The notes beneath the pieces were generated by a model. It saw only the letters and a program-made list of their open reading frames with translations. It made no database searches and was not told where the DNA came from. Positions 1 to 56,928 of a stretch of DNA of 64,000 bases are shown in pieces. Each line of letters opens with the position of its first letter. Within the stretch, counting starts at the first letter, position 1. Made by a program: the position numbers and the translations under genes. This DNA is from Paragordius varius (Eukaryota > Animalia > Nematomorpha), in the NCBI GenBank assembly GCA_964247055.1, contig OZ176058.1, positions 434,001 through 498,000 on the forward strand. Direction: 5' to 3'.

Positions 1-628
1 CGATAATTTTTTTGAAACTTCCAAAAAAATTCACTTTAATAATTTTTTTAGAATATCAATTATTTAATAATTTTAAATGTAATTATTAAAATTTTTTTTT
101 AAATTTCCATTATAGATCCCATTGACATACTTCGTTTTATTTCAATTAAAAATGATAGTTTTAATATTCTCAAGGGTTTAAAAACTATTTTTTTATATGC
201 AAAAAAGTCTGTGTTTTAGTTTATTTTTATATTTGTCTCTTTATATTTCATTTTAATAAATTTTTAAAACTTTCAAAAAAATTTACTCAAAAAAATATAT
301 ATTTTTAGATTATTAATATTCATTAAATTAAATAATTTTAACTGTAATTATTAATATAAAATTTTTTTTAAATTTCCATCATAGGTCTTTGGCATACATC
401 GTTATATATTCAATTAGCTTTAATATTTCAAGGGTTCAAAGTTGCAAAAAAATTGTGTTTTAGTTTCGCTTTACATTCGTCTTTTTATATTATTTTAATA
501 AATTTTTTAAAAATTTACTGTATTTTTAAAATTACTTTTTTCAATATTAATATTCATATAATTAAGTTATTTTAAAGTAATTATCAAAAAATTTTTACTA
601 TAATTATGAATTTTTTTTAAAAAAATAG
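1..628 (+). pseudogene. Tandem ~250-270 bp repeats carrying truncated 5' copies of the DGAT1 terminal exon (decoys starting at 116 and 385)
   Basis: tatag|ATC CCA TTG ACA TAC TTC GTT (IPLTYFV..., stop at 179-181) and catag|GTCTTTGGCATACATCGTT (frameshifted) resemble the real exon start GTT CCT TTG GCA TAC CTC GTT; the flanking intron sequence repeats with them. Confidence 0.8.
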
Positions 629-778
629 GTTCCTTTGGCATACCTCGTTTCAACTTATCTCAAAGGTGGTCAATGGGGTAATATCCTGGTATGGTTAAGT
701 CTTATCCTAGGTCAACCAATTTGTATTTTCATGTATTTCCATGATTATTACATTCTCAACATGGTTAAAAATCATTGA
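629..778 (+). CDS. DGAT1: Diacylglycerol O-acyltransferase 1, terminal coding exon (copy 1)
   Basis: AG acceptor at 627-628, phase 0; translates [49 protein letters not shown]. This matches the DGAT1 C-terminus (human [43 protein letters not shown]), with the same last-intron position. Upstream exons are outside the window. Confidence 0.92.
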   Translation, partial: VPLAYLVSTYLKGGQWGNILVWLSLILGQPICIFMYFHDYYILNMVKNH

Positions 779-3700
779 AAAATCAGCTGATCTGCATATA
801 CAAAATTTTGAATTCACCCGAACAAGGATTTCAAACCAAGAAATTTATCTGATGTGGATTTTATCAAATTCTTATAAATACATTTGATTGCAATAACAAA
901 ATGAAAAAATCAGCTGATCTGGATAAAATTCCAAAATCTTTTTACACATTCTCATGTATTTCCATGATTATTACATTCTCAACATGTACAACAATGTTAA
1001 ATAATTGAAAATCAGTTGATCTGGATACAAATATAATGTTAAAAACAACTAACAAATGCTAAAAACAGCTAAGAAATTCATCTAATGTGGGCATATGTAT
1101 TAATTTTCTATCATATAATTTAATACATCTTTAAAAATTTTTCTCGAGTTATTGCTCTTAAAAACAATGGAAAAACGAAAACAGCTGATCTGGAAAGAAT
1201 TCCAAAACCAATTTGTATTCTCATGTATTTCCATGATTATTACATTCTCAACATGGTTAAAAATTGATTGAAAAAACAGCTGATCTGCATATACAAAAAT
1301 AATGTTAAATTCACCCAAACAATAAGACCTTTAAGGATTCATTTTCGAGTTATTGCTCTTAAAAACAATGTAAAAAAATAAAATTAGCTTATCTAGATAT
1401 AAATCTCCAATAAATTCGCATATTCTTATGTATTTCGATGATTATTAATTCTTAACATGTACAACAATGTTAAAAATGAAGTTGAAAAAATCAGCTGATC
1501 TGGACATACAAAAATATTAAATTTACCCACTAACAATGATTGTTAAAAACAGCTAAGAAATATATTAAATGTAGATATATATCTAAATTAATGACCATAT
1601 AATTTTATATAAAACATTTTGGAGTTATTTCGATTGATAAAATAATCAGCTGATCTGGATGAAATTCCAAAATAACTGACATATTTCCATGATTATTACA
1701 TTCTCAACATGGTTAAAAAATTGAAAAATCAGCTGATCTGCACGTACAAAATTTTTAATTTTTTCAAACAAGGATTTCAAACAGCTAAATGGATATATTT
1801 TATAGCATCCTTAAAAAAACTTTCTCGAGTTATTGCTCTTAAAAACAATCAAAAATTAGCTGATCTGGATTAAATTACAAAATATACTTACAATTTTCAT
1901 GAATATTACATTCAACAATCGAAAAAAGAAAAACAGCTGATCTAGATATAAATCTACAATAAATTCGCATATTTTCATGTATTTCCATGATTATTACATT
2001 CTTAACATGTACAACAATACTAAAAATGATTGAAAAAATCAGCTGATCTGCATACATATATAATGTAAACAGCTAAATTTATCTAATGTGAATTTCATTC
2101 AGACCCTTTAAAAATTTACATTACAATTGAAAAAATGAAAAAAAAGGAAATCAGCTGATCTAGATATTAATCTACAAATCGCATATTTTTATGTATTTCC
2201 ATGATTATTATATTCTCAATTTGTATAAAAACAACAGTTAAAAAAATCAACTGATCTGCACATGCAAAAATTTTAAATTCAACCACTAACAATAAATGTT
2301 AAAAACAGCTAAAAAGTATATTTAATGTGAATTTTATCAGACCCTTTAAAAATTTATTTAATCGCAATTAACAAAATGAGAAAAAAGGAAAATCAGCTGA
2401 TCTAGATATAAATCTACAATCGCATTGTATTTCCATGATTACTACATTCTTAACATGTATAAAAACGACTAAAAACAATGGAAAAAAGAAAATCAGCTGA
2501 TCTGCACATACAAAATTTTGAATTCACCCACTAACAAATGTTGAAAACAGCTTATTTAATGAGGAAATATTTTATAAGAACCTTAAAAATTTATTTTCGA
2601 GTTATTGCTCTAATAAAATCGAAAAAGAATATCAGCTGATCTGGATAGATTTCCAAAATATACTTGGATATTTTCATGTATTTCCATGATTATTACATTC
2701 TTAACATGATTAAAAATTGAAAAATCAAGTTGAAAAATCAGCTGATCTGAATATAAAAATATTGAATTTTATCAAACAATGAATGTTAAAAACAGCTTAT
2801 TTAATAAGGAGATATATTATATCCCTTAAAAATTTATTTTGGAATTATTACACGTAAAAACAATGGAAAAAATAAAATCAGCTGATCTGGATAAAATCCA
2901 AAATATACTTACACATTTTATGTATTTCCATGATTTTTATATTCTCAACATGTACAACAATTTAAAAATGATTAAAAAAATCAACTGATCTGCATGTACA
3001 AAAATATTAAATTTACCCAAACAAGGATTTCAAACAACTAACAAATTTATCTAATGTGAATTTCATTTATACCCTTTAAAAATTTACATTACAATTAACA
3101 AAATAAAAAAGAAAATTATCTGTGGAAAGAATTCCACAATAAATTCGCAAATTCTTATGTATTTCCATGATTATTACATTCTCAACATGTATAAAAACAA
3201 CTAAAAATTGTTTAAAACAGTTGAAAAATCAGCTGATCTGTATATACAAAAATATTAAATTCACCCAAATTAATAACAGCGTAATTTTTCTATTCTGGAT
3301 ATATGTAAATTTGCGACCATTTATTTAAAAACCCTTAAAATTTTGAAGTTATTTCAATTGAAAAAAAATCAGCTGATCTGGATAAAATTTCAAAATAAAT
3401 TTGTATATACTCATGTATTTCCATGATTATTACATTCTTAACATGTACAACAATATTAAAAATGATTGAAAAAATCAGCTGATCTGCATACAAAATATTG
3501 AATTTACCCAAACAATGAATGTTAAAAAGGTTCAAGAAATTTATCTGATGTGGATTTATATCTAAATTTACGACCATATGAATTTATAAGATTTTTAAGG
3601 ATTCATTTTCGAGTTATTGCTCTTAAAAACAATGTAAAAAATTAAAATTAGCTTATCTGGAAAGAATTCCACAATAATTTCGCATATTATGTATTTCCAT

Positions 3701-5075
3701 AATTATTACATTCTCAACATGGTTAAAAATTGAAAAATCAGCTGATCTGCACACAAAAATATTGAATTCACTCACTAACAATGATTGTTAAAAACAGCTA
3801 AGAAATTTATCTAATGTTAATTTCATTCAGACCCTTTAAAAATTTACATTACGATTAACAAAATGAAAAGAGAAAATCACCTGATCTGGATAGAATTTTA
3901 AAATATACTTAAACATTGTGTATTTCCATGATTATTACATTCTTAACATGTATAAAACAACTAAAAACAATGGAAAAAAGAAAATCAGCTGATCTGCAAA
4001 CATAAATTTTAAATTCATCCAAACAATGAATGTTAAAAACAGCTTTAATGAGGACATATTTTATATCACTTAAAATTTTATTTTAAAGTTATTACACGTA
4101 AAAACAATGGAAAAAACAAAATCAGCTGATCTGGAAATAATTCCAAAACCAATTTGTATTCTCATGTATTTCCATGATTATTACATTCTCAACATGGTTA
4201 AATAATTGAAAAATCAACTGATCTGCATATACAAAAATATTGGAATTCACCCAAACAATGAATGTTAAAAACAGCTAAGAAATTTTGTAAATTTATGACC
4301 ATATAATTTTATGAGACCTTTAGAAATTTATTTTGAAGTCATTGTTCTAATAAAATCGAAAAAGAATATCAGCTGATCTGGAAAGAATTCCACAATAAAT
4401 TCGCATATTCTTATGTATTTCCATGATTATTACATTCTCAACATGTATAAAAACAACTAAAAACAGTGTTGAAAAATCAGCTATTTTGCATATTCAAAAT
4501 TCACCCAAACTATAAATGTTAAAAACAGCTAAAAAATTTATCTTATGTGGGCATATATGTAAATTTACGACCCTATAATGTTATATAAAACATTTTGTAG
4601 TTAAAGCTCTAATACAATCGAAAAAAATCAGCTGATCTGGATACCAAAATATACTTGCGTTTTTTCATAAATTTCTTAACCTGATAACAATCGAAAAAAA
4701 ATCCCCTGATCTGGATATAAATATACCATAAATTCGCATATTTTCATATATTTCCATGATATTCTTAACATGTATAAAAACAACTAATAAGAGTGTTGAA
4801 AAATCAGCTGATCATCACACACAAATATTAAAATCAAAATCAGCTGATCTGGAAAGAATTCTAAAATATATACGCGTATTTTCATGTATTTCCATGATTA
4901 TTACATTCGCAACATGTATAAAAACAACTAAAAACTGTTTAAAACAAATGAAAAATCAGCTGATCTGGAAAGAATTCCAAAATATATACGCGTATTCTTA
5001 TGTATTTCCATGATTATTACATTCGCAACATGTATAAAAACAACTAAAAACTGTTTAAAACAAATGAAAAATCAG
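779..5075 (+). repeat. Exon-derived satellite array 1, ~245-bp unit, about 18 units
   Basis: Recurrent core ATGTATTTCCATGATTATTACATTCTCAACATG (= DGAT1 [11 protein letters not shown]) at about 961, 1231, 1437, 1687, 1986, 2199, 2432, 2685, 2928, 3166, 3421, 3697, 3926, 4172, 4420, 4754, 4892 and 5009; typically two CAGCTGATCT motifs per unit. Confidence 0.93.
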
Positions 5076-6700
5076 CTGATCTGCATACAAAAAATATTGA
5101 GTTCAACCACTAACAAATGTTAGAAAGGGCTTAGAAATTTATTTTATGTGGGCATATATGTGTAAATTTACGACCATATAATTTTATAAGTCCCCTTAAA
5201 AATTTATTTTATTGCACATTAAAAGTGCAAAAAGGAAAACAGCTGATCTGGATAGAATCATTTCTAAAAAATACGTCAATGTTACATGTTCTATAGCATA
5301 TTTAGGATTTTTACATTCACAGCATAACCAATATCTTCTAATCTAAAAAATCAACTGATATGGATGATTTCTAAAAGATATTATATTGATTACCTATTTA
5401 CTTGATATATAACGCGAAAAAACAACTACGTATCAATATTAAACTAGTTTTACACGAGCAATTTTGATATAATATACAATAATTTGCAATAAAAGCCCTA
5501 AAAACGAAGAAAACCAGCTGATCTTCGAAAAAATATGGAAATTACATTAACTTTTCATGTATTCATAATTATTGCATATTCTTAATATGTCGTAAAAAAG
5601 TTTTGAAACTAAAAAAACAGCTGATCTGTATAATAATTAAATAACTTTGATGATTATTACATCGTTAACACGGAAAATAACCACAAAAATGTTTAAAACA
5701 ATTAGAATATCAGCTGATATAGATGAAAACTATAAAAAAATATATACGTTTTTATCACCATAAATGATAACGCTTAAGAAAATGATATAATCTGCAAATA
5801 ATTTACAGAAAATATATTTTTATTATTCTTATGGAAAAAAGTAATAATCAGCTGATTTGAAAATAGTTGAAAAGATGTTTTTATTACTCTAAATAGAAGT
5901 AATCAACTGATCTGAAAATAACTCACAAAAATATATTACTCTTAAAATGGAAAAAGAAACAATCAGGTGATCTGAATCAAAAATTCTGAAGGTCACATTT
6001 CTCCACCATCAGATTACATAATTTTTCAGGAGGTTCTTTTAGAATTCAAATCATTAATCAATCAAACACAGCTTGAAGAAAAAAATCAGCTGATATGGAT
6101 AAATTTTAACAAAAATACACGTTTTCATTACCATAAATAGTAATGCAAAAGAAAATAAGGTATTTGAAAAAAATAACTGCAAAGATGTTTTTATTAATCT
6201 AAAACGAAGTAATCAGCTGATCTGAATCAAGAATTCCAAAGAATACGTCTCTCCACCATCAAATTACATAATTTTTCAGGACGCCCTTTTAGAAAATTCA
6301 TAAATATTAAACAATTAAACACAGCTTGAAGAAATAATCAACTAATATAGGTAAAATTGTAAAAATATTAAAATACGTTAAAATCAAGAATTGAAATACA
6401 CAGACTACATTAAAAGTCATTACTAAAGAATTCAAAAGGAAAAATCAATTATATTGAAAAAAATTCTCAAAAATACGTTTCTTTTATCTTAATTATTACA
6501 TAACATGTACAAAAAACCGCATCAATAATAATGTAGACCTTAAAGAAAAACAGCTGATCTGGATGATTTTTTAAAATATTGCTTTAAACCAAAAGTATTG
6601 CAATATATTTATTTATAAAAGTTAAAAAATTATCAAATCATTACCCTCTCATAAAACTAAAAAAAGAAAATATAATCAGCTGATCTTGAAGAACATTGAT
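5076..6700 (+). repeat. Older degenerate extension of the satellite (CAGCTGAT-bearing units)
   Basis: CAGCTGAT(C/A)T recurs every ~70-300 bp with decayed ATTATTACAT cores; collinear with about 24150-25620. Confidence 0.75.
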
Positions 6701-15525: not shown

Positions 15526-15951
15526 ATTTACAGTTCAAATTAACCCTCGAACAATTCAAATTCACCCTTGAACAACTCAAATTCACCCTTGAACAATATT
15601 AATTCACCCTTAAACAATTCAAAGTCACCCTTGAACTATTCAAATTCACCTTTGAATAATTCGGATTCACCCTTAAAATAAATTATGTGTTTTCGAACTA
15701 ATATAACTCATTATTAATATGAAATATATCTTTATGGCATAATTTATTATTTTTTTAGTAATATTTTAATTTAAAACAAAATTTTTATTTTTTAAAAATA
15801 TATAAAATATAGGTAATTTTCTTAAAAAACATGTTATTTATTTGAGGGTGAATTTGAATTGTTCGAGGGTGAATTTGAATTGTTTAAGGGTGTTGAATTG
15901 TTCGAGGGAGAATTTGAATTGTTTAAGGGTGAAATTGAACTGTAAATGGTA
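15526..15951. mobile_element. Foldback-type MITE family B copy (TIRs built of 21-bp subrepeats)
   Basis: (TTCAAATTCACCCTTGAACAA)n left arm, ~170-bp core, (GGGTGAATTTGAATTGTTC)n right arm ending CTGTAAATGGTA. Confidence 0.85.
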
Positions 15952-16291
15952 TATTTAGCTAAATTTTTAGCCATAAAGTTTTATCAGCTATAAAAGATGG
16001 GGCTTGTAAATATCATTTTATATTATATAAGTTTTAAATTTCATTATTTTTTTTACAATGAAAAAATTTAAAAATAATGTGCAAAATTACCGATATAATA
16101 TTTTTCTTATAATTTGTTTTTCATTGATTTATTCAAAAAAATGTGTGAAATTACCTTTATAATATTTTTCTTATATTTTTTTTTACATTCAATTATTCAA
16201 AAATTATTTGAATTATATTACATATTCCGAATAATTTTTATTCCTCAGATGTAAAGATGCGTATTTTATTTCATTTTTATTTTTTGATATA

Positions 16292-16606
16292 TACCATTTA
16301 CAGTTCAAATTCACCCTCGAACAATTCAAATTCACCCTAATAATAAATTATGTGTTTTCGAACTAATATAACTCATTATTAATATGAAATATATGCTTAT
16401 GTCATAGTTTATTATTATTTTTCAGTGTTTTTTTAATTTAAAATTAATTTTTTATTTTTTAAAAATATATAAAATATATAGGTAATTTTTAATCTTAAAA
16501 AACATGTTATTTATTTGAGAGTGAATTTGAATTGTTCGAGGGTGAATTTGAATTGTTCAAGGGTAAATTTGAATTGTTCAAGGGTATATTTGAACTGTAA
16601 ATGGTA
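16292..16606. mobile_element. MITE family B copy (cleanest)
   Basis: TACCATTTACAGTTCAAAT...ATTTGAACTGTAAATGGTA perfect terminal inversion in a TA-rich site. Other copies at about 19697-20033, 20446-20710, 33300-33628, 34083-34395, 36117-36416, 36531-36805, 54064-54385 and 56400-56928. Confidence 0.9.
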
Positions 16607-18972
16607 TATATAATAAGTTTTTAGCCATAAAGTTATATCAGCTATAAAAAGATGGGGCAGTAAATATCATATTATTATATAAAGTTTTAAACTTCATATT
16701 TTTTTTACATTTAAAAATTAATCAAAAAAATGTTCGAAATTACCTTTATAATATTTTTCTTATAATTTTTTTTACATTTATTAAAAATTATTTGAAATAT
16801 ATTATATATTCCAAATCAAAATTCAGATGCGTATTTTATTTCATTTTTATTTATTGATTGATATATATACATTTATTTATCTATTGTTTTTTTGGGAGTT
16901 TAAATTTTTTGATTATTCTTTTTTGGTTGTGCCATTTAAATATTAGTTACTATATATTTTAGTGTTTATATTTTTATCTAATCAATTAACTTCCATTGTA
17001 CAATTATAAATATGCCATCTCTTTTACAAATAAGACAATAAAATGTATAAATATATTATATACAGTTAATCCTCATATTATAAATATATATTAAGCATAA
17101 AACATTATTTTATAATAAAATTAATTTTGAGTTAAAGGCAAAAACATTATAAAAAAGTTGAATTATTTCATCTTAAAATAATATGCCAATATTTTAAAAA
17201 TTAGCTGTTTTCGTGTAAGTAATTTATTATTGTTTGTTAAAATAATTATTTTAAAAATTTTTGATTTAGTAAAAAAGATTAATGATGTTTTAAAATGGAA
17301 AATCTAGTTTACACACTATGCTAACTTATATTTTAAAATTGTAATTAAAATTTTATAATTGATTTATTTTATTTTTAGATTAATTTAATCAGCAAATCAT
17401 ATTTTCAATAAATTTAAAATAAGTCAAACTATAAAATAAAAATGGTATAAATTATATTTAAATAACCTTTAATTATCCAATAACATTAAAACAATCAAGT
17501 ATTTATTTAAAACGACACTATATCTGATGGTTAAAATTAAGAATAGAAATAATGAAATAAATTTTACAGAAACTTGAAATTTATTATTGCACAAATTTTA
17601 TTAAATAATATTTAAATTTCATTTTAAAAAAAATGAGAAACTTGAATCTAATCCTACAAAGGAAGAAATGTCATTTTAAAATAAATTATTGATAGCAAGT
17701 ACAGTAAAACATCCAATTATACGTAAAAAACGTAAAAATATAAAGAAAAATGTTTTTACTAAAAGAAAACCATATTATATTATAATATTTCCCGTAATAA
17801 AACTACTTAATAACAATCTCAAAATTTATAATAAATTATGTTACCAATATACATATCTATTTTATACTTTGAAAATCAAAAACAATGAGTTAACACTTTG
17901 GTTGAAATTGGGGTATTTATACCCCAGACTAAATTTAAGTTGAAATTTTTAATAAAACTACTGTAAGAAACAAATTATAATTTATGCTTTTATCATGATA
18001 AAAATTATATAAATATGCCAAAATATCTTGATAATTTGTTTTTAAAAAAAGTTTTATCTCAAACTAGCTTTTATCTTAGCCTAATCCTAAAATTTTAGAT
18101 TTTTCGCATCAAAATTAATTACTTAGTATATTTTACTTTTTATAATCTCAATAAAGATTTATTGAACTGATATTTTCTTTCACTAAATTTTGACTAAATC
18201 GATCGTCTTTTATTTCATTGAGTTTTTTCGGAAAAATACTGTTAGGGATATTTGAAGTGACTTACTGTGAAACGATTATTTTTTAAGATAGTAGAAAATT
18301 ATACGAAACGTGAAAATATAAAGACAAATATTTTTTTTAATATAACCATACTTTTATTTTTGGATTGATTTAAAGATAAATCATTGTTTTAAACTACAAA
18401 GTATAATATAGAAACGTAAATTGGTAACACAATCAATTTTATATTTTACATTGTAATTAAGAAGCTTTATGAAAAACATTAAGGTTATAAAAAATAATGA
18501 GGACTTTAGACAAAAATATTTGTTTTTCTATTTTTACGTTTTGTCCGTATAATTTTATTTTTTACTGTAATTTCCATGCACTCTCATATACTTTAATTTC
18601 AAGTAATAAAAATTCCGTAATCAGTAAAATGGATTTTTTAAAAATTCTATTCAAAACAAACTATATTTGTATATTCATTAATTATTTTGATATAATAGCC
18701 TAAATATTCAGTTTCGTAATATATAATTGGTGAGATATTCGTTTTTACAGACCATCGCTTAAAATATATAGCTTATATCGAAAAATTATTTAACTCTAAT
18801 TTATTATTTAATTTTTAATATTTTATATTTCTTATTTAATTATTAATTTATTTTTTTATTTTATTTAAGTTTTTTATTTTTATTTTATTATATTTTAATA
18901 GTATTTTATTAATAATTTAATTATTTTTTTGGTTCAAGTATGGTGTAAGAATATGTATCCCTTGCCTTTTTA

Positions 18973-19696: not shown

Positions 19697-20033
19697 TACC
19701 TTTTACAATTCAATTCACCATTAATCAATTCAAATTCACCCTTTAAATCAAATTCACTTTCAATTAATATATATGTTTTTTAAGTTAAAAATTACCTATA
19801 TTTTTGTAAAATAAAAATTTTGTTTTCACTCAAAAATACTGAAAATATAATAAACTGTGCCCTAAAAATATATTTCATATTAATAATGAGTTAGATTAGT
19901 TCGAAAACACATAATTTATTTTTAGGATGAGTTTGATTTGTTCAAGGGTGAATTTGAATTGTTCGAGGGTGAATTTGAATTGTTCAAGGGTGAATTTAAA
20001 TTGATCAAGGGTGAATTTGAACTGTAAACGGTA
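19697..20033. mobile_element. MITE family B copy with identifiable empty paralogous site
   Basis: Flanks CTTAGCTTACAATATATA-cc...gg-TATATATTC versus empty site CTTAGCTTACAATATATATTCAATT at about 35699. Confidence 0.85.
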
Positions 20034-20864: not shown

Positions 20865-20928
20865 TCTCTCTTGAGTGTTCCACTTCATATGTTTCGACTA
20901 TGGGCTTTTTTTTGGAATGCTTATGCAA
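20865..20928 (+). pseudogene. DGAT1: DGAT1 penultimate exon (copy 2), carrying +1 T in a T8 run and Ser at the conserved Tyr position
   Basis: tttttag|TCT CTC TTG AGT GTT CCA CTT CAT ATG TTT CGA CTA TGG GCT TTT TTT (T) GGA ATG CTT ATG CAA|gtaagt = SLLSVPLHMFRLWAFFGMLMQ versus human [21 protein letters not shown]. It is 64 nt rather than 63. Could be an assembly homopolymer error. Confidence 0.8.
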
Positions 20929-21119
20929 GTAAGTTTTATATTTAATTAATTTTTTTTATTGTTTTCTAAAAAACTTTTTGTTAATATCCATAAATAAAAA
21001 ATTAAATTATTCTTCTCAAACCATTTTGCATTAACACCATATTTTATATATAAAAAATTTTAGAATCAAAAAACGTCAAAAATATTTTTTTTATTAAAAA
21101 CAAAAACCATTTGTCTTTA

Positions 21120-21380: not shown

Positions 21381-21550
21381 TATGCTGTTTAATGCTTAGT
21401 TAAAATGTTATATATATCGTGTAACTTTAGTTACAAATATACCTTACTATATTTATTATATTTAACCAAATTATATTATAAAAATACTTTTATATCTTAG
21501 ACTTTTTTTAAGTTTTTCTTTAGTTTAAAATTTTTTTTTACATAAAATAG

Positions 21551-21876
21551 GTCTTATTGGCATACATTGTTTCAACTTATCTCAAGGGTTAAATATTCTC
21601 AAGGGTTCAAAAACTATGGTTTTATTTGCAAAAAAAATGTGTTTTACTTTCTTTTTACAAATATTTTAATAAATGCTTTAAAGTTCCACAAAAAATTCAC
21701 TCTATTTTCAAACAATTGAAAATTATATTAATATTTATGTAATTAAATAATTTTTAAATGTAATTATTTAAAAAATTTTTTTTTATAAAAAATAGGTTCC
21801 TTTGGCATACATTGTTTCAACTTATCTCAAGGGTTTAATATTCTTAAGGGTTCAAAAACTATGGTTTTATCTGTAA
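21551..21876 (+). pseudogene. Two acceptor-intact truncated decoys of the DGAT1 terminal exon (21551-21592, 21796-21876)
   Basis: AG|[13 protein letters not shown] and AG|[26 protein letters not shown]; both are in frame with the real exon for about 13 codons, then stop. Confidence 0.85.
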
Positions 21877-22008
21877 AAAATACTCTATTTTCGAAATTAA
21901 CTCTTTTTCAATATTATAATATTCATATAATTAAGTTATTTTAAAGTAATTATCAAAATAATTTCAACTCTTATCAAAAAAATTTTTTAAATTAAATTTC
22001 CATCATAG

Positions 22009-22155
22009 GTTCCTTTAGCATACATTGTTTCAACATATCTCAAAGGTGGTCAATGGGGTAATATTCTGGTTTGGTTAAGTCTTATCCTAGGTCAACCAAT
22101 TTGTATTCTCATGTATTTCCATGATTATTACATACTCAACATGGTTAAAAATTGA
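22009..22155 (+). CDS. DGAT1: DGAT1 terminal coding exon (copy 2)
   Basis: catcatag| [48 protein letters not shown]; open frame, phase 0. Confidence 0.88.
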
Positions 22156-24150
22156 TTGAAAAATCAGCTGATCTGCATACAAAAATATTAAAACAATGTT
22201 GATAACAGCTAAGAAATTAATCTAATGTTAAAAACAGCTAAGAAATTTATCTAATGTGAATTTCATTCAGACCCTTTAAAAATTTACATTGCAATTAACA
22301 AAATGAAAATCAGTTGATCTGGAAACAATATTAAAACCAATTTGTATTCTCATGTATTTCCATGATTATTACATTCTCAACATGGTTAAATAATTGAAAA
22401 AACAGCTGATCTGCATATACAAAATTTAGAATTTACTCACTAACAAGGAATGTTAAAAACAGCTAAGAAATTTATCTAATGTGGGCATATGTGTAAATTT
22501 ATGACCCCATAATTATATCAGACCTTTAAAATTTATTTTAAAGTCATTGCAATTAATAAAATAATTCAAAAAAAACAACTGATCTGGATAAAATTCCACA
22601 ATAAATTCGCATATTCTCATGTATTTCCATGATTATTACATTCTGAACATGTACAACAATGTTAAATAATTGAAAAATCAGCTGATCTGCATACAAAATA
22701 ATGTTAAAAACAGTTAAGAAATTAATCTAATATGGATATATATAGGCGTGTAAATTTTCGACCATCTAATTTTATAACACCTTTCAATTAAAACAAGGAA
22801 TCAAAAAAAATCAACTGATCTGGAAACAATTCCAAAACCAATTTGTATCCTCATGTATTTCCATGATTATTACATTCTCAACATGTATAAAAATTGAAAA
22901 AATCAGCTGATCTGCATCAAAAATATAGAATTCATCCAAACTATGAATGTTAAAAACAGCTAAAAAAATTTGTAAATTTATGACTATATATTTTTAAAGA
23001 CCTTTGAAAATTCATTTTACGAGTTATTGCTCTTAAAAACAATCAAAAATCGGATCTGGATAAAAATATATTACCGATTTCTTGTATTTCCATGATTATT
23101 ACATTCTCAACATGGTTAAATAATGATTGAAATCAGCTGATCTGCCTATACAAAAGTATTAAATTCACCCAAACAAGGATTTCAAACAACTAACAAATTT
23201 ACCATCTAGTTACCCTTAAATTATGGAGTTCTTGCACGTATAAAATGGAAAAATCATCTGATCTGGATTAAATTTTAAAATTTACTTACACATTTTCTGT
23301 ATTTCCATGATTATTACATTCTCAACATGTACAACAATGTTATATAATTGAAAAATCAGCTGATCTGCATACAAAAATATTGAATTCACCCAAAGAATGA
23401 ATGTTAAAAACAATTCATTTAATGAGGACATATTTTATATATCCCTTAAAAATTTATTTTGGAGTTATTACACGTAAAAACAATGAAAGAAAAAAGAAAA
23501 TCAGCTGATCTGGAAAAAATTTTACAATAAAATCGCATATTCTCATGTATTTCCATGATTATTACATTCTCAATATGAATAAAAACAACTAAAAATTGTT
23601 TAAAACAGTTGAAAAATCAGATCTGCAACAAAAATTCAAAATTTACCCACTAACAAATGTTAAAAACAGCTAAGAAATTGTAAATATTCGACCATATAAT
23701 CTTATAGGACCCTTAAAAATTTATTTTAAAGTCATTGCTAAACAATCGAAAAAGAGAATCAGCTGATCTGGATATAATTTCCAAAATAACTGACATATTC
23801 CGATGATCTACATTCTCAACATGAATAAAAACTAAAAACAGTGTAGAAAAATCAGCTGATCTGCATATACAAAAATATTAAATTCCCTCAAACAATGTAA
23901 ACAGCTAAGAGATTTACCATCTAGTTTTATAAAACCCTTAAATTATGGGGTCATTGCAATTTAAAACCAAAATATACTTACACATTTTCATTTATCTAAT
24001 ATGGGCATATGTGTAAATTTATGACCATTTTAATTTTATAAGACCCTTGAAATTGGATTGAAAAAAAAACCTGGATAGAATTCCAAAATAAATTCGAAAA
24101 TTTTCATAATATTACATTCTAAACATGTATACAACAATGTTGAAAATGTT
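22156..24150 (+). repeat. Exon-derived satellite array 2, about 8 units (degenerate tail to about 25620)
   Basis: Same [11 protein letters not shown]-encoding core at about 22360, 22628, 22861, 23089, 23305, 23552, 23800 and 24105, with CAGCTGATCT motifs. Confidence 0.9.
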
Positions 24151-26163
24151 GGAAAAATCAGCTGATATGAATAATAATTTCCAAATAATACGTCAATGTC
24201 ACATATTCTATACAATATTCAAATTATTACATTCGAAACATAAAATAACCCTAAAAATGTCTGAAATATTTAAAAAAATCAGCTGATATGGATAATATCT
24301 AAAAAAAAAAAATTAAATTTGATACTTGAATATAAAGTTAAAAAATAAAAACAGCTGATCTGGAGAGAGAATTAACTACTTATCAATATCAAACTAGTTT
24401 TACTCGAGCAATTTTGATTGAATAGATAATAATATACAATAAAGGCCTTAAAAACTACTGATTTTTGGGAAAATATGAAAACCATCACATTAACTTGTCA
24501 ATTATTTTCATAATTATTACATATTCTTGACATGCAAAAAAGTTTAGAAACTAAAAAACAGCTGATACTGATAATAATTCGAAAAAAAACATTAACCTAG
24601 ATTACTGATTTTCTCAAAATAACGCAAAAGAAAAAACAGCTGATCTGGATAGAAAAATTTAGAAAAAATTTGTTTTACCTACATATCCTCATACACCTTC
24701 ATGATTATTACATTTACAACGTGGACAATTATCACAAAAATATATAAAACAATTAAAATATCAGCTGATATGGATAAAAATTTTAAAACAAATATACGTT
24801 TTCATCACCATAAATAGTAATGCAAAAAAAGGATTATTTGATAAAAAGTTTACTGCAAATATGGTAAATTTACTCTAAAAAGAAGTAATCAGCTGATATT
24901 AATCAAAAATTCTAAAGATGACGTTTATCCACCATTAGATTACATAATTTTTTATGATTCCCTTTTAGAAAATTCAAATTATTCAACAATTAAACACAGC
25001 TTGAAAAAAACAGCTGATATGGATAAAATTTTAACAAAAATGCACGTTTTCATTACCATAAATAGTAATGCAAAAAAAGGATTATTTGAAAAAAATTTGC
25101 TAAAAATATGTTTTTATTACTCTAAAAAGAAACAATCAGCTGATCTTCAAAAATTTAGTATACATCTTTGCACCATCAGATTACATAATTTTTCATGACG
25201 ACCTTTTAGAAAATTCATAAATATTAAACAATCAAACATAGTTTGAATAAAAAATCAGTTGATATAGATAAAATTTTAAAAATGGTAAAATTTGTTAAAT
25301 TCAAGAATTGAGATACATAGACTACATTTAAAGTCATTACTAAAGAATGCAAAAAGGAAAATTAATTTTCTTGCAAAACAATCCTCAAAAATACGTTACT
25401 TTTGACCTAATTATTACATATTCTTTACATATGAACAAAAAAAGATTAATAATAATAGACACTTCAAAGAAAACAGCTGATCTGGATGATTTTATAAAAT
25501 ATTGGTTAATTGAACCAAAAAGATTGCAATATATTTATAAAAGCTAAAATTTTTATATTTTCGAATCATTACTCACGCAAAAAAAGAGAATATTATCAGC
25601 TGTTGGAAAAAATTCATAAATGAATTATTTTACCCACATTATTTAATCAAATATTTTTAATCTCGATGGTGTCTTTCATATATATTATATATAAAATATT
25701 TTTTTAAATTTTTAATCTCGATAACATATTATATATAAATTAAATAAATATATTTATATTTTAATGGCAATATGAATTGACAATTGTTAATCTACAATAT
25801 TTATATGCATATTTGTGCATCGCAGACGTAATAATAAATAAATTAATATATATATTTTAAAAAAATTTTAATATATTAAATATTTTCAATTATTTTTCAA
25901 ATAGAATTCTTTTTTTGAGGCATTGATTGGGTAACATGTATAATATTATACAGTAGCATTCGATATTATACGGACAAAACGTAAAAATATAAAGACAAAT
26001 ATTTTTTTCTAAAGGCAATTATACTTTTTAAAACCTTTAATTCTCGTATATAAATACTCTAATTAAAATTGAAAATATGTAATTGATTGTATTACCAACT
26101 ACCTCTCTATTCCATATTTTGTCATTCAAAACAATGAGTTTTATTTAAATAAATAAGTTTATA

Positions 26164-33097: not shown

Positions 33098-36000
33098 ATC
33101 CTCATTTTCTAAACATATACTAGGCATAAAACATTATATATAATAAAATAATTTTTGAGTTAAAGGCAAAAACATTACAAAAAGTTGATTTATATCCATA
33201 CCATTGTCCTTTTACAATAATATGACCATGATTTAATACTTAGCTGTCATTGTTTAATTTTAAACTACAGTTTAAAATAGGTGCTTAGCTTACAATATAT
33301 ATCATTTGCAGTTCAAATTCACCCTTAAACAATTCAAATTCCCCCTTGAACAATTTAAATTCACCCTTAAACAATTCAAATTCACCTTCGAACAATTTAA
33401 ATTCACCCTAAAATAAATTATGTGTTTTTTAAGATTAAAAATTAGCTATATTTTTTTTTTAAAAAAAAAGAAATTTTGTTTAAAATTTAAATAATACTGA
33501 AAAATTATTAAACTATGCCATAAAAATATATTTAATTTTAATGATGAGTTATATTTGACTGAAATTTCATAATTTATTTTTAGGGTGAATTTGAATTGTT
33601 TAAGGGTGATTTTGAATTGTAAATGGTATATATTCAATTATTTTTATTTAGATGAGATAATTTGCTAAACTATAAATTTGCTTGAAATTTAATCAAATTA
33701 TTTTAAAACTATTTTTATTTTTCCCATCTTATTTACAGTAATTATAATTATCAAAATTAAAACTAAAATTTACTATTTTTTTAAAGAAAACAATATTTTT
33801 ACCTAGTTTTTTTCTACAGAAAACTTTTCATTTTCAAATATTAATTAAGAGTTTTCAATTTTATTTTCCCCCAAAAAATAACTTAATGTCCCTTATTATA
33901 GAAAATGTGTATATAGATATACATATGTAACAAATCAACATCCATGGAATTTTCATTTTCATTTATATATTTATTCTAATTAATAGATTAAACAATTTTA
34001 AAACCAAATTATAAGGGGTATATAAATATTTAGCTAAATTTTTAGCCATAAAGTTATTAGCTAAAAAAAGATGCTGTAAATATACCATTTCCAATTCAAG
34101 TTTACCCTTAAACAATTCAAATTCACCCTTGAACCATTCAAGTTCACCCTTGAACAATTCAAATTCCTTAACTAATATATATATTTTTTAATATTAAAAA
34201 TTACCTATATATTTCTATATATTTTTAGAAAATAAAAATTTTGTATTAAATTAAAATACTACTGAAAAAATAAATAACTATGCCATAAAGATGTATTTCA
34301 TACTTATAATAAGTTATATTAGTTCGAAAACACATAATTTATTTTTTGAGGGTGAATTTGAATTGTTCAAGGGGGAATTTGAACTGTAAATGGTATATTA
34401 TATTATATAAGGTTTTAGACTTCATTATTGATACATTTAAAAATTATTTGAAATATATTTATTACATATTCCGAATCAAAATTCTTTTAAAGATGCGTAT
34501 TTTATTTCATTTTTATTTATTGGTTGATATATATAATTATTTAGCTATTGTTTTTTTGGGGGTTCAAATTTTTTGATTATTCTTTTTTGGATGTGCCATT
34601 TAAATATTAGTTACTATATATTTTAGTGTTTTTTTAATCTATTCTCTTAATAATCCACTAATATAAATTATGAATATGCCATCTCTTTTACAAATAAAAA
34701 GACAATAAAATGGGTAAATATATTATATACAGTCAATTTTCATATTGTGAACATATATTAAGCATAAAACATTATATATAATAAAATAAATAATTTTTAA
34801 GTTAAAGACTAAAACATTACAAGAAAGTTAATATTTATATCATCTTAAAATAATATGGCGATATTTTAAAATTTACTGTTATCGTGGAAATAATTTATTT
34901 TTGTTCGTTAAAATAATTATTTTTTAAAAGTTTAGTAAAAAATTTTAATGATGTAAAATGGAAAATCTAGTTTACACAGTATATTACATTATTTTTTAAA
35001 ATTGTAACTAAGATTTTAAAATTGAGTTATTTATATATATTTAGATTGATTTAATCAGCAAATCATATTTTCAATAAATTTAAAGCTACAAAATTTAAAA
35101 TAATTAAAATGGTATAAATTACATTAAAATAATCTTTAATCATCCAATAACATTAAAACAAATAAGTAGAAATAATAAAATAAATTTTACTGAAATTTAA
35201 AATTTATTAGTTTGCGCAAATTATATTAAATAATATTTGAATTTCATTTCAAAAATTGAAAAACTATATGGATAAATCCCCACAAAGGAAAAATGTCATT
35301 TTAAATTAATTGTTGATAGTTAGTACAGTAAAACATCAAATTTACGAAAAAAATGATAAAATATATATAAAAAATCCTTAAAACTACCTAACAAAGGCCA
35401 AAATATATAATTAATTATGTTATCAATATAAATCTTTATTAAAAGTATGGGTGTCTTTTAGGAAAAAATATTTGTCTTTATATTTTTACGTTATGTCCAT
35501 TTAATTTCAATTTGTACTGTCATAAGTCAATCCTCATTTTATAAACATATACTACGCATAAAACATTATAAATAATAAAATAATTTTTGAGTTTAAGGCA
35601 AAACATTACAAGAAAATTAACTTATTTCTATACCTGACGATGATTTAATACTTAGCTGTCATTGTTTAAATTTTTTAAACTACAGTTTAAAATAGGTGCT
35701 TAGCTTACAATATATATTCAATTATTTTTAGACGTGACAATTTGCTATATAACTATAAATTTGCTTGAAATTTAAAATCAAATTATTTTAAAACTATTTT
35801 TATTTTTCCCAGCTTATTTACAATAATTGTATTTAAAAATAAAAAATTAAAAAATAAAATTTACTATTTTATAAAGATAAAAATTTTTTACCTGGTTTTT
35901 TCTACAGTAAATTTTACAATTTTAAATAATTAAGATTTACCAAATTTATTTTCGCCCCCCAAAAATAACTTATTGTCCCTTATTCCAGAAAATGTGTGTA

Positions 36001-39000
36001 TTGATATACATATGTAACAAATCCACATCCATGGAATTTTCATTATTTTAAATATTTATTCTAATTAATTGATTAAACAATTTTAAAACCAAATTATAAG
36101 AGGTGGTATATAAATATTTACAGTTCAAATTCACCCTTGAACAATTCAAATTCACCCTTGAACAATTCAAATTCATTTTTGATAACTCATTATTAATATA
36201 AAATATATCTTTATGGCATAATTTATTATTTTTTCAGTATTATTTTAATTTAAAACAAAATTTTTATTTTTGAAAAATATATAAAATATAGGTAATTTTT
36301 AATCTTAAAAAACATGTTATTTATTTGAGGGTGAATTTGAATTGTTCGAGCGTGAATTTGAATTGTTTAAGGTTGAAATTGAATTGTTTAAGGGTTAAAT
36401 TGAATTGTAAATGGTATATTTCCAATTAATAGATTAAACATTGTTAAAACCAAATTATAAGGGGTAGTATATAAATATTTAGCTAAATTTTTACCATAAA
36501 CTTATCAGCTAAAAAAAGATGGTGTAAATATACCATTTCCAATTCAAATTTACCTTCGAACAATTCAAGTTCACCCTTAAACAATTCAAATTTGCCCCTA
36601 ATTAAAATATATGTTTTTTAAGATTAAAAATTACCTATATTTCTATATATTTAATAAAAATTTTGTTTTAAATTAAAATAATACTGAAAAAATAAATAAC
36701 TATGCCATAAAGATGTATTTCATACTAATAATGAGTTATTTTAGTTTACATAATTTATTTTTAGGGTAAATTTGAATTGTTCAAGGGTGAATTTGAATTG
36801 TAAATATTATATTATATAAGGTTTTAAACTTATAATTTTTTTTTACAATTAATTATTTAAGAAAATGTGCAAAATTACCTTTATAATATTTTTCTAATAA
36901 TTTTTTTTTCATTTAAAAATTATTTGAAGTATATTACAAATTCCGAATCATAATTCTTTTAAAGATGCGTATTTTATTTCATTTTTATTTATTGTATATA
37001 TATATATTTATTTATCTATTATTTTTTGGGGGGTTCAAATTTTTTAATTTATTCTTTTTTTGGTTGTGCCATTTAAATATCAGTTACTATATATTTTAAT
37101 ATTTATTTTTAACTTTTCTTTTTAGTTACTTATTTTAAGGTAGATAAATATGCCATCTCTTTTACAAATAAAAAGACAATAAAATGGAAAAATATATTAT
37201 ATACAGTCAATCCTCATATTATAAACATATATTAAGCAAAAAGCATTATTTTATAATAAAAAAATTTTTGAGTTGAAGGCAAAAACATTACAAGAAAGTT
37301 GTTTCATCTTAAAATAATATGCCGATATTTTAAAAATTAGCTGTTTTCGTATAAGTAATTTATTATTGTTCGTTAAAATAATTATTTTTTGAAAGGTTAG
37401 TAAATTTTGTTATAAAAATCTAGTTTACACAGTATGCTTATATTTTGAAATTGTAATTAAAATATTAAAATAAAGTTATTTATATATTTTTGATGATTTA
37501 ATCAGTAAATCATATTTTCAATAAATTTAAAGCTAGTCAAAATTTAGAATAATTAAAATGTGGTATAAATTATACTTAAATATTCTTTAATCATTTATAA
37601 CATTAAAACAATCAAGTATTTATTTAAAACGACACTATATTTGGTGGTTAAAATTAAGGATTAATAAAATAAATTTTACTGACACTTGAAATTTTTTTCA
37701 TTACACAAATTATATTAAATAATATTTTAATTTCATTTCAAAAATTGAGAAACTATATGAATCTAACCCTACAAAGGTAAAAATGTCATTTTATATAAAT
37801 TATTGATAGCTAGTACAGTAAAAATTCAAATTATACGGACCAAAACGTAAAATATAATGAAAAATGTTTTTTTCAAAAATACAAGCATTCTACTTTATAA
37901 TATTTCCCTTGTTAAAACTACTTAAAAAGCTCAAAATAATAATTAATTATGTTACCAATATACATCTCTATTTTATTCTTTGGAAATAAAATACAATGAA
38001 TTAAATTAAAATTAAACAAGATATAAAAAGTATGGTTGACCTTAAATAAAAAAAATTTTGTCCATATATATTTACATTTTTTCCGTATAATATCATTTTT
38101 TACTGTAATACATTCAGTTATAAAATTAATTATTATCGTCAAAATTACCATACTAAAAATTTAGTAAGAGTAATTAACGTAAACCACTATAGGCATATTA
38201 AAAATTCTTAATTATATTTTTTAAGTGCGTTTTAAAGGGCCATACAAACATCAAATTATATAAAAAAAGATTTTTTATAAGATCTAACAGTGTATTTATA
38301 CCTTTTTCATCTAGCCTAAAAATAGGACAAAGTATGTTTCAACAAAATTTTGCCAACAATTTTAGATTTTGTAAAAAATATGCTTTTTTTTAAAAAAAAA
38401 CCTTTTTTTGAAAGTTTAGTATATATATTTTTTTATTGCGCAATCTTGTCATTTTTGCAATTTTAACAAAAAAGTTAAAACATTTTACGAGAGCGAAAAA
38501 AATTTGGACTTTCAAAGTCCACACCTATAAATTACTGTAAAAATATTATACTACGGACAAAACGTAAAAATGTAAAGACAATTTTTTTCCTAAAAGACAA
38601 CCCCATGCTTTTTAAATCTGGATTAATTTAAATTTAACTCATTATTTTTGTAAATTCCAAAGTAATAATAGAGATGTTAATTGGTAACATATAAATAGTT
38701 ATAGGCTTGTTATCAAGTATTTTTCTAGGATTTATTAAGTTTGAAAAAGTATGGTTGTCTCTTAGAAAAAAATATTTATCTCTATATTTTTACGTTTTGT
38801 CGGTATAACTTCAATTTTTATTGTAAAATTTTATAAAATAATTGTTTTTATAGGTTGGTTATGATATATATAAGTTCTGTTTTTTGAATGGATAATTTAG
38901 CATTCATTATAAAAATTTGGTTTTAAAAAAACGCAAATTTTGCTATTTTCTTTTATAAAGCACTTGTTATAAAAGTATTAATAAGTTTATTAAATCACTC

Positions 39001-54063: not shown

Positions 54064-54385
54064 TACCATTTACAGTTCAAATTTACCCTTAAACAATTCA
54101 AATTCACCCTCGAACAATTCAAATTTACCCTCGAACAATTCAAATTCACCCTCAAAAAAATATATGTTTTTTAAGATTTAAAATTACCTATATTTTAATA
54201 TATTTTAAAAAAATAAAATTTTGTTTTAAATTAAAATAATACTGAAAAAAATAATAAATTATGCCCTAAAGATATATTTTATATTAATAATGAGTTATTA
54301 ATTCGAAAACACATAATTTATTTTTGCGTGAATTAGAATTATTTAAGGGTGAATTTGAATTGTTCAAGGGTGAATTTGAACTGTA
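54064..54385. mobile_element. MITE family B copy inserted in (TA)n
   Basis: TACCATTTACAGTTCAAAT left end; GGGTGAATTTGAACTGTA right end; TA runs on both sides. Confidence 0.85.
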
Positions 54386-56399: not shown

Positions 56400-56928
56400 T
56401 TTTAATTTAGAATTCACTCTTAAACAATTCAAATTCACCCTTAAACAATTTAACTTCACCCTTAAACAATTCAATTCACCCTTAAACCATTCAAATTCAC
56501 CCTTAAATAATTTAGTTGAACAATTCAAATTCACCCCGGAACAATTCAAATTCCCCCTCGAACAATATAACTTCACCCTTAAACAATTCAAATTCACCCT
56601 TGAACAATTCGATTCGCCATTAACAATTCAAATTCACCCTTGAACAATTCAATTCCCCCTCGAACAATATAACTTCACCCTTAAACAATTCAAATTCACC
56701 CTCAAATAAATTATATGTTATTTAAGATTAAAAATTACCTATTTTTTATATTTTAAAAAACAAAATTCTGTTTAAAATTAACATAAAACTAAAAAATAAT
56801 AAACTATGCCACAAAGATATATTTTATATTAATAATGAATTATTTTAGTTCGCACAAAATTGTTTTTTTAGGGTGTATTTTAATTGTTTCAGGGTAAATT
56901 TGAATTATTCAAATTTGAATTAATGGTA
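56400..56928. repeat. MITE family B copy with expanded 21-bp minisatellite arm (about 14 units)
   Basis: (AAACAATTCAAATTCACCCTT)n over about 56405-56705, then the family core and a short right arm. Confidence 0.85.

Follow-up and report, generated by a model that had tools for sequence, protein, structure and literature searches.

The terminal exon of DGAT1 in the hairworm Paragordius varius is followed by an old tandem array whose units are built from the end of the exon itself. The stretch of DNA analyzed here (64,000 nucleotides, hereafter the window) carries two copies of this exon, each with its own array, and each repeat unit combines 11-17 codons from the very end of the exon with the stop region and 3' flanking sequence. 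The array was already present when the exon was copied four-fold, and its variable segments have been reshuffled around conserved blocks; its origin, locality, age and mosaic structure can be read directly from the four resulting arrays. We hold with moderate confidence that the whole is explained by an old, local tandem duplication at the exon edge that was copied along with the exon and later underwent exchange anchored at the conserved blocks.

All features described here within the window lie on the forward strand. The first exon copy in the window, termed copy C, occupies positions 629-778 (49 codons at 629-775, stop codon at 776-778). The repeated part of the exon starts at 713, and a "live" array of units extends from there to 5075, where the last intact unit ends. 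A 26-mer taken from positions 731-756 (codons MYFHDYYIL) has 24 matches with no more than three mismatches in the window, while zero are expected from shuffled sequences. Seventeen matches fall in 731-5025, confirming the exon-tail repeat originally predicted at 713-5075, and the other seven fall in 22111-23570, at exon copy D (22009-22155; 48 codons, stop codon at 22153-22155). Units are mostly spaced 205-280 bases apart (median ~245), and some reproduce a full exon-like stretch running from CCAATTTG (codons PICIL...) to the stop region. The coding tail had been estimated at 15-20 codons and the unit numbers at about 18 and 8; the repeated tail spans 11-17 codons, and we count 19 units after exon C, two of which form a young pair of 116-base half-units, and six intact plus one or two broken units after exon D. 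The live array of copy D covers 22094-23750. Beyond each live array lies a distal "dead" part, at 5076-6700 for copy C and, together with the broken units, at 23751-25500 for copy D, the latter collinear with the former. In the distal part of array C the coding segment has decayed (at least 10 mismatches in 33 bases), and CAGCTGAT cores are mostly retained.

Searches of the entire 110-Mb assembly place this repeat family beside DGAT1 terminal exons only. The 26-mer has 42 matches, all on C9, the assembly sequence to which the window belongs, in four clusters that each adjoin one DGAT1 terminal exon. All 54 matches obtained by BLAST with the whole unit, and all 29 obtained at the protein level, lie within these same four clusters. 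Thus, the proposed derivation of the unit from the DGAT1 exon tail, stop codon and 3' flank holds, the exon match is homology rather than coincidence, and no DGAT1-independent repeat of this kind is found in the genome. Arrays A, B, C and D contain about 13, 12, 19 and 6-7 units, respectively. Classical satellite DNA can carry a conserved protein-binding box, such as the CENP-B box, as a short invariant motif within diverging tandem units that form megabase arrays. In contrast, the DGAT1 family comprises about 50 units (roughly 13 kb) in four local arrays of about 1.5-4.3 kb at one gene family, with no link to centromeres. This is minisatellite scale, and the term satellite DNA, which implies high copy number, long arrays and a sizeable fraction of the genome, does not apply.

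The identity of the gene was established by searching human DGAT1 (6vp0) exon by exon, which gives collinear matches to residues 97-141 (E 9e-14), 259-286 (4e-8), 387-416 (1e-3) and 438-481 (1.3e-11), the last being the terminal exon of copy C. Four copies of the terminal exon exist, all on C9. Two copies of DGAT1 had been assumed in the window, but the full genes reside upstream of it, at C9:393.8-414.7 kb (+) and 375.9-352.9 kb (-), and copies C and D are orphan 3' fragments located 20 and 41 kb downstream of a full gene. On C9, the terminal exons B, C and D are at 414537, 434629 and 456009, and the penultimate exon of the full gene is at 411661-411723. Homology of copy C to gene B begins within the last intron, and the duplicated block holds no further DGAT1 exon upstream of copy C. 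The only other DGAT1 exon in the window is a copy of the penultimate exon at 20868-20931 (..LLSVPLHMFRLWAFFGMLMQ), which belongs to copy D and is frameshifted by a one-base insertion in a T run at 20908-20915 (T8 versus T7) that could be a homopolymer assembly error. The four terminal exons are 92-97% identical to one another, with mostly synonymous differences, while their flanks are 51-57% identical. The C-terminal tails differ, ending in VK, VKN or VKNH, and each of these stop-region variants that tell the four exons apart recurs in units of other arrays.

Within a unit, the order is palindrome 1 (..CAGCTGATCTGGA), ~45 bases, a coding island, 25-45 bases, palindrome 2 (..CAGCTGATCTGCA) and ~140 bases. 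The island corresponds to 11 codons (for example, positions 731-763). An alignment of 37 units reveals three blocks with conservation of at least 0.9, compared with 0.5-0.7 elsewhere, and these are the island codons and the two ATCAGCTGAT palindromes. The edges of the blocks are sharp. When scored by ungapped Hamming distance, island mismatches are distributed bimodally, with three or fewer per 33 bases in 38 of ~49 proximal units and broken islands in about 11; one island contains a stop codon. Non-consensus bases make up ~6% of synonymous and ~2% of non-synonymous island positions, versus 30-50% in the flanks. Distal units retain palindromes after decay of the island, and several of these palindromes are themselves degraded in one or more of the collinear copies. 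The sense strand of the arrays is about three-fold depleted in AATAAA.

The palindromes belong to a word, AWCAGCTGWT, that is over-represented throughout the genome. From 784 to 6687 there are 47 sites matching the CAGCTGATCTG core with at most two mismatches, or about two per unit. The first core (784-794) begins five bases past the stop codon and is kept in all four exon copies. Genome-wide, ATCAGCTGAT occurs at 929 sites, ~46-fold more than the 20 of a reversed-word control, and an extended 14-mer occurs at 129 sites versus none for its control. On C11, on C10 and at other places on C9, unrelated arrays have this 14-mer as their conserved core. In 164 kb, the hexamer CAGCTG is present 159 times, compared with about two expected from base composition.

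Several observations indicate that the arrays are old and that their parts have been reshuffled. Two units of the same array are on average no more alike than two units of different arrays (mean identity 0.68 in each case), such that the variable parts display no within-array homogenization. The best cross-array pairs of units reach 0.78-0.84, and their order is not collinear. Flank subtypes are common to all four arrays, and the decayed distal part is collinear from A through D at 79-87% identity (865 ungapped four-way columns). The junction ..AAAA|CCAATTTG is shared by every exon-like unit in B, C and D, which points to a single origin; exon-like units are absent from A. Flank types on the 5' and 3' sides of the island are unlinked (permutation p 0.43). 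Among 28 complete units, Mantel comparisons of similarity matrices give modest correlations within a spacer (r 0.22-0.27, p about 0.01), a weak one across the island (r 0.10) and none across the palindromes (r 0.00 and -0.02). Tandem Repeats Finder (TRF) reports only fragments over array C because the units are too diverged; one row (4836-5083) corresponds to the only young duplication in this array, the two 116-base half-units at 4841-5072. These are 97% alike, with a CAGCTGATCTG core at both borders.

In the history that we favor, one old tandem duplication of ~245 bases (possibly of ~120 bases at first) would have had one breakpoint within the DGAT1 terminal exon and the other in the 3' flank, so that the gene keeps an intact exon as the first repeat. 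Every further repeat would then consist of 11-17 codons of exon end, stop region and flank. Four copies of exon plus array would have arisen subsequently, first when the entire gene underwent an inverted duplication (A and B) and then as two tandem copies of ~20-21 kb that include only the 3' end of the gene (C and D). Since that time, the proximal parts of the arrays may have kept changing by unequal exchange or gene conversion, with junctions falling in the three near-identical blocks, namely the island codons and the two palindromes. Both this exchange mechanism and the reason for block conservation are inferences; on this view, repeated exchange with terminal exons under protein-level selection would hold the codon block uniform. 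Exchange is favored by the present differences in unit number between arrays, by the palindrome cores that border the one young duplication and, for traffic between exon and array, by the recurrence of exon-distinguishing stop-region variants in units of other arrays. Conversion tracts, however, would be expected to blur the edges of the blocks, and direct selection fits their sharpness at least as well. The strong conservation of synonymous island positions also counts against exchange, and the model does not account for palindromes that outlast the island in distal units.

The sharp block edges and the surviving distal palindromes speak for an alternative that we regard as unlikely overall but as the strongest competitor, in which the array is a selected cis-regulatory or 3'-end module and the blocks are under direct selection in each unit. 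In this module, AWCAGCTGWT sites would form a phased lattice with two sites in every 245 bases; a symmetric DNA-binding protein would recognize the lattice together with the island, or both would be read at the RNA level as part of a long 3' UTR. The genome-wide excess of ATCAGCTGAT and CAGCTG, the use of the 14-mer as the core of unrelated arrays, the retention of the first palindrome in every exon copy and the depletion of AATAAA are all in keeping with such a module. However, the island is absent elsewhere in the genome, and thus nothing marks it as a general binding site; moreover, about 11 of 49 proximal units have a broken island, and several distal palindromes have decayed in one or more copies. 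An explicitly functional version, to which we assign a somewhat smaller chance still, holds that the array is retained because it works, with gene B using alternative terminal exons B, C and D, ~20 kb apart, each equipped with its own lattice of AWCAGCTGWT sites and exon-tail copies acting in cis. Proteins bound to such a lattice would determine which 3' end is chosen, or would control termination or insulation; alternatively, the lattice would supply donor copies for gene conversion, which would preserve the exon tail in a genome exposed to extreme A/T mutation pressure. In orphan exons C and D, conservation ends at the exon edges and changes are mostly synonymous, a pattern that is hard to explain unless both are expressed.

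The remaining alternatives are far less probable. The original prediction envisioned a young satellite caught forming from a coding exon. The unit does come from the exon, and the 97%-identical duplication demonstrates that the array is still able to grow, but this is a single young event among units that are ~68% alike and no more similar within than between arrays, and the array accompanies each of the four old paralogous exons, with common subtypes and a collinear decayed distal part; we judge this account very improbable. Slightly less credible again is chance resemblance of the exon to a transposon or other genome-wide repeat, or an artefact of assembly. Other arrays in the genome share the CAGCTGATCTG core alone, but matches to the whole unit and to the island are confined to the four DGAT1 sites. 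Contigs from two DNA runs match stretches of the array exactly, with the same single-copy depth as the flanks (about 160x in one run and 45x in the other). This dispels the concern, raised at the outset, of a collapsed or mis-expanded array, and the four arrays have diverged from one another. Joints seen in DNA contigs at 90% likeness most likely represent contigs of sister arrays. The original prediction also placed the array possibly within the 3' UTR; two possible RNA runs yield zero contigs over positions 1-6000, exon included. Finally, units serving as alternative coding mini-exons for the DGAT1 C-terminus were rejected because in-frame acceptors are absent. The variants seen in the island do include 7 of 12 possible synonymous and 20 of 87 possible non-synonymous changes, a mild synonymous excess that is confounded by C-to-T mutation bias. 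However, the nearest AG upstream of the islands is in a different frame, the product would miss the preceding 33 residues of the terminal exon, and one island has an internal stop codon, such that this possibility merits next to no weight.

The favored reading, an old exon-edge array copied with its exon, makes the DGAT1 arrays a variant of known exon-edge repeats rather than a new class. In amphioxus, tandem duplications at exon boundaries of the Adh3 and globin genes, called "mirages", undergo concerted evolution (PMC3087553). Like mirages, the DGAT1 arrays are head-to-tail repeats that include a truncated exon edge and have the authentic exon as the end repeat; unit sizes are similar (150-160 bases in globins, ~245 here), and in both systems either side of the exon can be affected, with turnover by unequal exchange in mirages and, as proposed above, probably here (PMC3087553). 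The arrays upstream of the window exons match the mirage definition exactly (PMC3087553). Upstream of copy C (1-628), units of about 245-269 bases each include a decayed splice acceptor joined to the initial ~35-45 terminal-exon bases; direct repeats are spaced 234-269 bases apart, with half-exon copies near 111-147 and 380-415. Upstream of copy D (21527-22008), the acceptor and the first 43 exon bases recur at 21547 and 21792, ahead of the exon itself at 22005, with 91-93% identity and spacings of 245 and 213. In contrast to mirages, the array at 713-5075 spans the stop-codon end and 3' flank instead of an exon-intron junction, and therefore carries no splice signal. Its units are old and ~68% alike, versus 81-100% for globin mirages (PMC3087553), it was copied four times with its exon, and short conserved blocks stand within decayed units. 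In intron 7 of human F7, the first unit of a 37-base VNTR spans the exon 7 boundary (PMC1557585). Here too, a tandem array starts with a unit that belongs to a genuine exon edge, but its units are short and intronic and repeat a donor site, whereas those of DGAT1 are ~245 bases long and involve a terminal exon and stop region.

The same palindromic core is known from Drosophila, where the CAGCTG E-box (Ohler motif 5, NDM5) of housekeeping promoters peaks just upstream of transcription starts (PMC1779564, PMC3375229). The hairworm word likewise has A/T flanks and a strongly non-random genome distribution, but it sits past the stop codon and occurs twice per repeat unit.

The DGAT1 arrays illustrate the long-term fate of tandem repeats that began within coding sequence: most of the unit decays, and the short blocks linked to the authentic exon or to a genome-wide palindrome are preserved as the apparent points of reshuffling. 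The array also rewrites the last residues of the protein, in that the endings VK, VKN and VKNH each match a unit variant. This locus offers a concrete local test bed for two genome-wide peculiarities of a very AT-rich animal, its exon-edge arrays and the AWCAGCTGWT word.

An Rfam search of positions 1-26000 returned no match, and a literature search on repeats in hairworm genomes returned nothing useful. In other organisms, a word-based protein search recovered two terminal exons of DGAT1 at 63-64% identity, one of them with only 74 bases of flank. The pattern FYxDWWN has no match on C9, probably because an intron splits the motif. When the genome was scanned with the Pfam MBOAT model, the DGAT1 genes on C9 escaped detection (one match, E 0.037), and other MBOAT genes were detected on C1, one SOAT-like and one LPCAT-like.

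At window positions 629-775 (629-778 with the stop codon), on the plus strand of a 110.5-Mb animal assembly with roughly 20% G+C, lies an open DGAT1 terminal exon of 49 codons with an AG acceptor just before it. This exon, termed copy C, matches human DGAT1 (488 aa) over residues 438-481 at E 1.3e-11. When up to 3 mismatches are allowed, the 26-mer at window 731-756 (codons MYFHDYYIL) occurs 24 times in the window and not at all in shuffled sequences. Seventeen of these copies fall in window 731-5025 and seven in 22111-23570, most with a spacing of 205-280 bases. Within the exon, the repeated part begins at window 713, and intact units stop near 5075, such that the coordinates, period and unit counts of the original prediction are correct. 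TRF detects the array in fragments only, because the units are too divergent.

A genome-wide search with the exon protein confines the repeat family to four clusters on contig C9 (OZ176058.1), of which the window spans 434001-498000. All 54 whole-unit BLAST matches in the genome fall in the same clusters, as do all 42 matches to an exact pattern with ≤2 mismatches (control, 0). Each of the four clusters adjoins one full terminal-exon copy: A (C9:353059-352916, minus strand), B (C9:414537-414677 or 414680, plus strand), C (C9:434629-434775, window 629) or D (C9:456009-456152, window 22009, to 22155 with the stop codon). Since clusters are present only beside DGAT1 terminal exons, the unit is not an independent genome-wide repeat, and the three independent searches rule out this alternative to an origin from the exon. 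A collapsed or mis-expanded assembly is likewise ruled out. Contigs from two DNA runs (two samples) are identical to stretches of the array, for example window 2088-2457 and 4434-4906, and their depth there (about 160x and 45x in the two runs) equals that of the unique flanks; thus the array is neither collapsed nor inflated. At window 2601-2800, the summed contig depth of run X2 falls to 16, compared with about 100-170 in adjacent bins, and that of run X1 is normal; the drop could reflect a unit-level difference between samples or a filter effect.

DGAT1 exons were located by comparing the A and B regions, and individual exons, searched one at a time, are collinear with human residues 97-141, 259-286, 387-416 and 438-481. 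Only A (C9:375.9 to 352.9 kb, minus strand) and B (C9:393.8 to 414.7 kb, plus strand) have full gene bodies, arranged head to head, and the two copies in the window are not genes. Homology of C to gene B begins inside the last intron and continues onward, and that of D begins ∼400 bases before the penultimate exon. Because this homology is limited to the 3′ end, C and D are DGAT1 3′-end fragments, produced by two segmental duplications in tandem, each of about 20-21 kb. The B, C and D terminal exons are in tandem, about 20 kb apart. In the penultimate-exon copy of D (window 20868-20931), one extra T shifts the frame; the run at window 20908-20915 is T8, compared with T7 in both full genes, which is either a true frameshift or a homopolymer error.

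The four terminal-exon copies are 92-97% identical, and their flanks 51% (300 bases upstream) and 57% (300 bases downstream). The conserved stretch extends from the acceptor to just beyond the first palindrome, and differences are mostly synonymous (4 synonymous and 1 conservative change between B and D). The orphan exons C and D retain an open frame and the acceptor, and judging from sequence a single DGAT1 gene may express them as its alternative last exons. Two runs that may be RNA yielded no contig over window 1-6000, the exon included. Sense-strand AATAAA is depleted about three-fold in the arrays relative to the 164 kb around them, which is compatible with the array being transcribed as 3′UTR or not.

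The 253-base unit consensus, from an alignment of 37 units, opens with a CAGCTGATCTG core and GA, then has ∼45 variable bases and the 33-base coding island (11 residues, as at window 731-763); 25-45 variable bases spanning the stop region lead to a second CAGCTGATCTG core, here with CA behind it, and ∼140 variable bases close the unit. Conservation is 0.9-1.0 in the island and both cores, and 0.5-0.7 elsewhere. The array is present at 4/4 exon copies, and in their variable part units average 0.68 identity, whether compared inside one array or across arrays; the top cross-array unit pairs reach at most 0.78-0.84, and their order is not collinear. Variants of the island-flanking segments are common to all four arrays, and exon-like units carry one identical junction throughout, between AAAA and CCAATTTG. 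Beyond a sharp boundary at window about 5100 (C) and about 23750 (D), units have lost the island, and these distal units are collinear across A-D at 79-87% identity. Together, these features show that the array is old and arose once, before the four-fold copying of the exon. The presence of the array at all four copies, its 0.68 identity and its collinear distal part contradict the proposal that a satellite has been caught forming. A 116-base half-unit pair (window 4841-5072), 97% identical and bounded by the palindrome core, is the sole young event.

Unit numbers differ among arrays (about 13, 12, 19 and 6-7). The island has ≤3/33 mismatches in 38 of ∼49 proximal units and is broken in the others, chiefly by indels, giving a bimodal distribution of mismatches. 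Flank types 5′ and 3′ of the island are unlinked (permutation p 0.43). When linkage was assessed by correlating pairwise-similarity matrices of neighboring segments, matrices correlated within one spacer (r 0.22-0.27, p about 0.01), weakly across the island (r 0.10), and not across either palindrome (r 0.00 and -0.02). Given these values and the unlinked flanks, the units are mosaics with junctions in the conserved blocks, the expected result of unequal exchange or conversion requiring short stretches of identity. The exon end presumably participates in this exchange, since the stop-region variants that distinguish exons (tails VK, VKN and VKNH) are each found again in units of other arrays. 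Island variants occupy 7 of 12 possible synonymous and 20 of 87 possible non-synonymous changes, a comparison confounded by C-to-T bias.

Amphioxus ‘mirages’ are tandem duplications across exon-intron boundaries, with units of 10-160 bases, concerted evolution and unstable length (PMC3087553); the F7 intron-7 VNTR is a human case (PMC1557585). The half-exon arrays upstream of C and D (window 1-628 and 21527-22008) are mirages by this definition. In contrast, the downstream array is a stop-codon-side analogue that repeats no splice site, and is much older, with conserved blocks.

The palindrome is a genome-wide word. ATCAGCTGAT has 929 genome sites (20 for the reversed control), and the 14-mer AATCAGCTGATCTG has 129 (control, 0); unrelated arrays on C10, C11 and other parts of C9 have it as their conserved core. 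Within the 164 kb around the window there are 159 CAGCTG sites, where base composition predicts about 2. The DGAT1 array is a non-coding occurrence of this word downstream of a gene. A CAGCTG core is a housekeeping-promoter motif in Drosophila (PMC1779564, PMC3375229), a resemblance that might serve as a lead only. (A/T)ATCAGCTGATCTG is the most conserved element of unrelated arrays (units of 120-240 bases) at C11:672-676 kb (L029), C10:3156-3159 kb (L032) and C9:1983-1986 kb (L031). Another array, at C9:1190-1192 kb (L030:3200-4990), has units of about 270-290 bases in which the CAGATCAGCTGAT palindrome is paired with CCCTAGATGGCGC and each unit carries a donor-like GGTAAG; CCCTAGATGGCGC resembles the insect CTCF site.

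Other repeats were observed within DGAT1 and the window. An intron array of copy A (C9:370449-371115) shares the 12-base palindrome AAACAGCTGTTT among its units. A large DGAT1 exon (C9:396856-397710 and 372089-371193) contains an internal repeated insertion (..SADVSLPRQRRGKD..) that differs in copy number between genes A and B, with CATCAGCTGATG in each repeat. A 21-base repeat, TTCAAATTCACCCTTGAACAA, forms many arrays in the window (15530-16610, 19924-20025, 33312-34166, 36120-36597, 54072-54380 and 56411-56906), frequently in facing orientations, and these look like subterminal repeats of a foldback-type mobile element. Elsewhere, C1:4787656-4788501 (stretch L002) holds an intronless 488-aa open frame matching the MBOAT family, unlike the other MBOAT genes of the genome, which have many introns.
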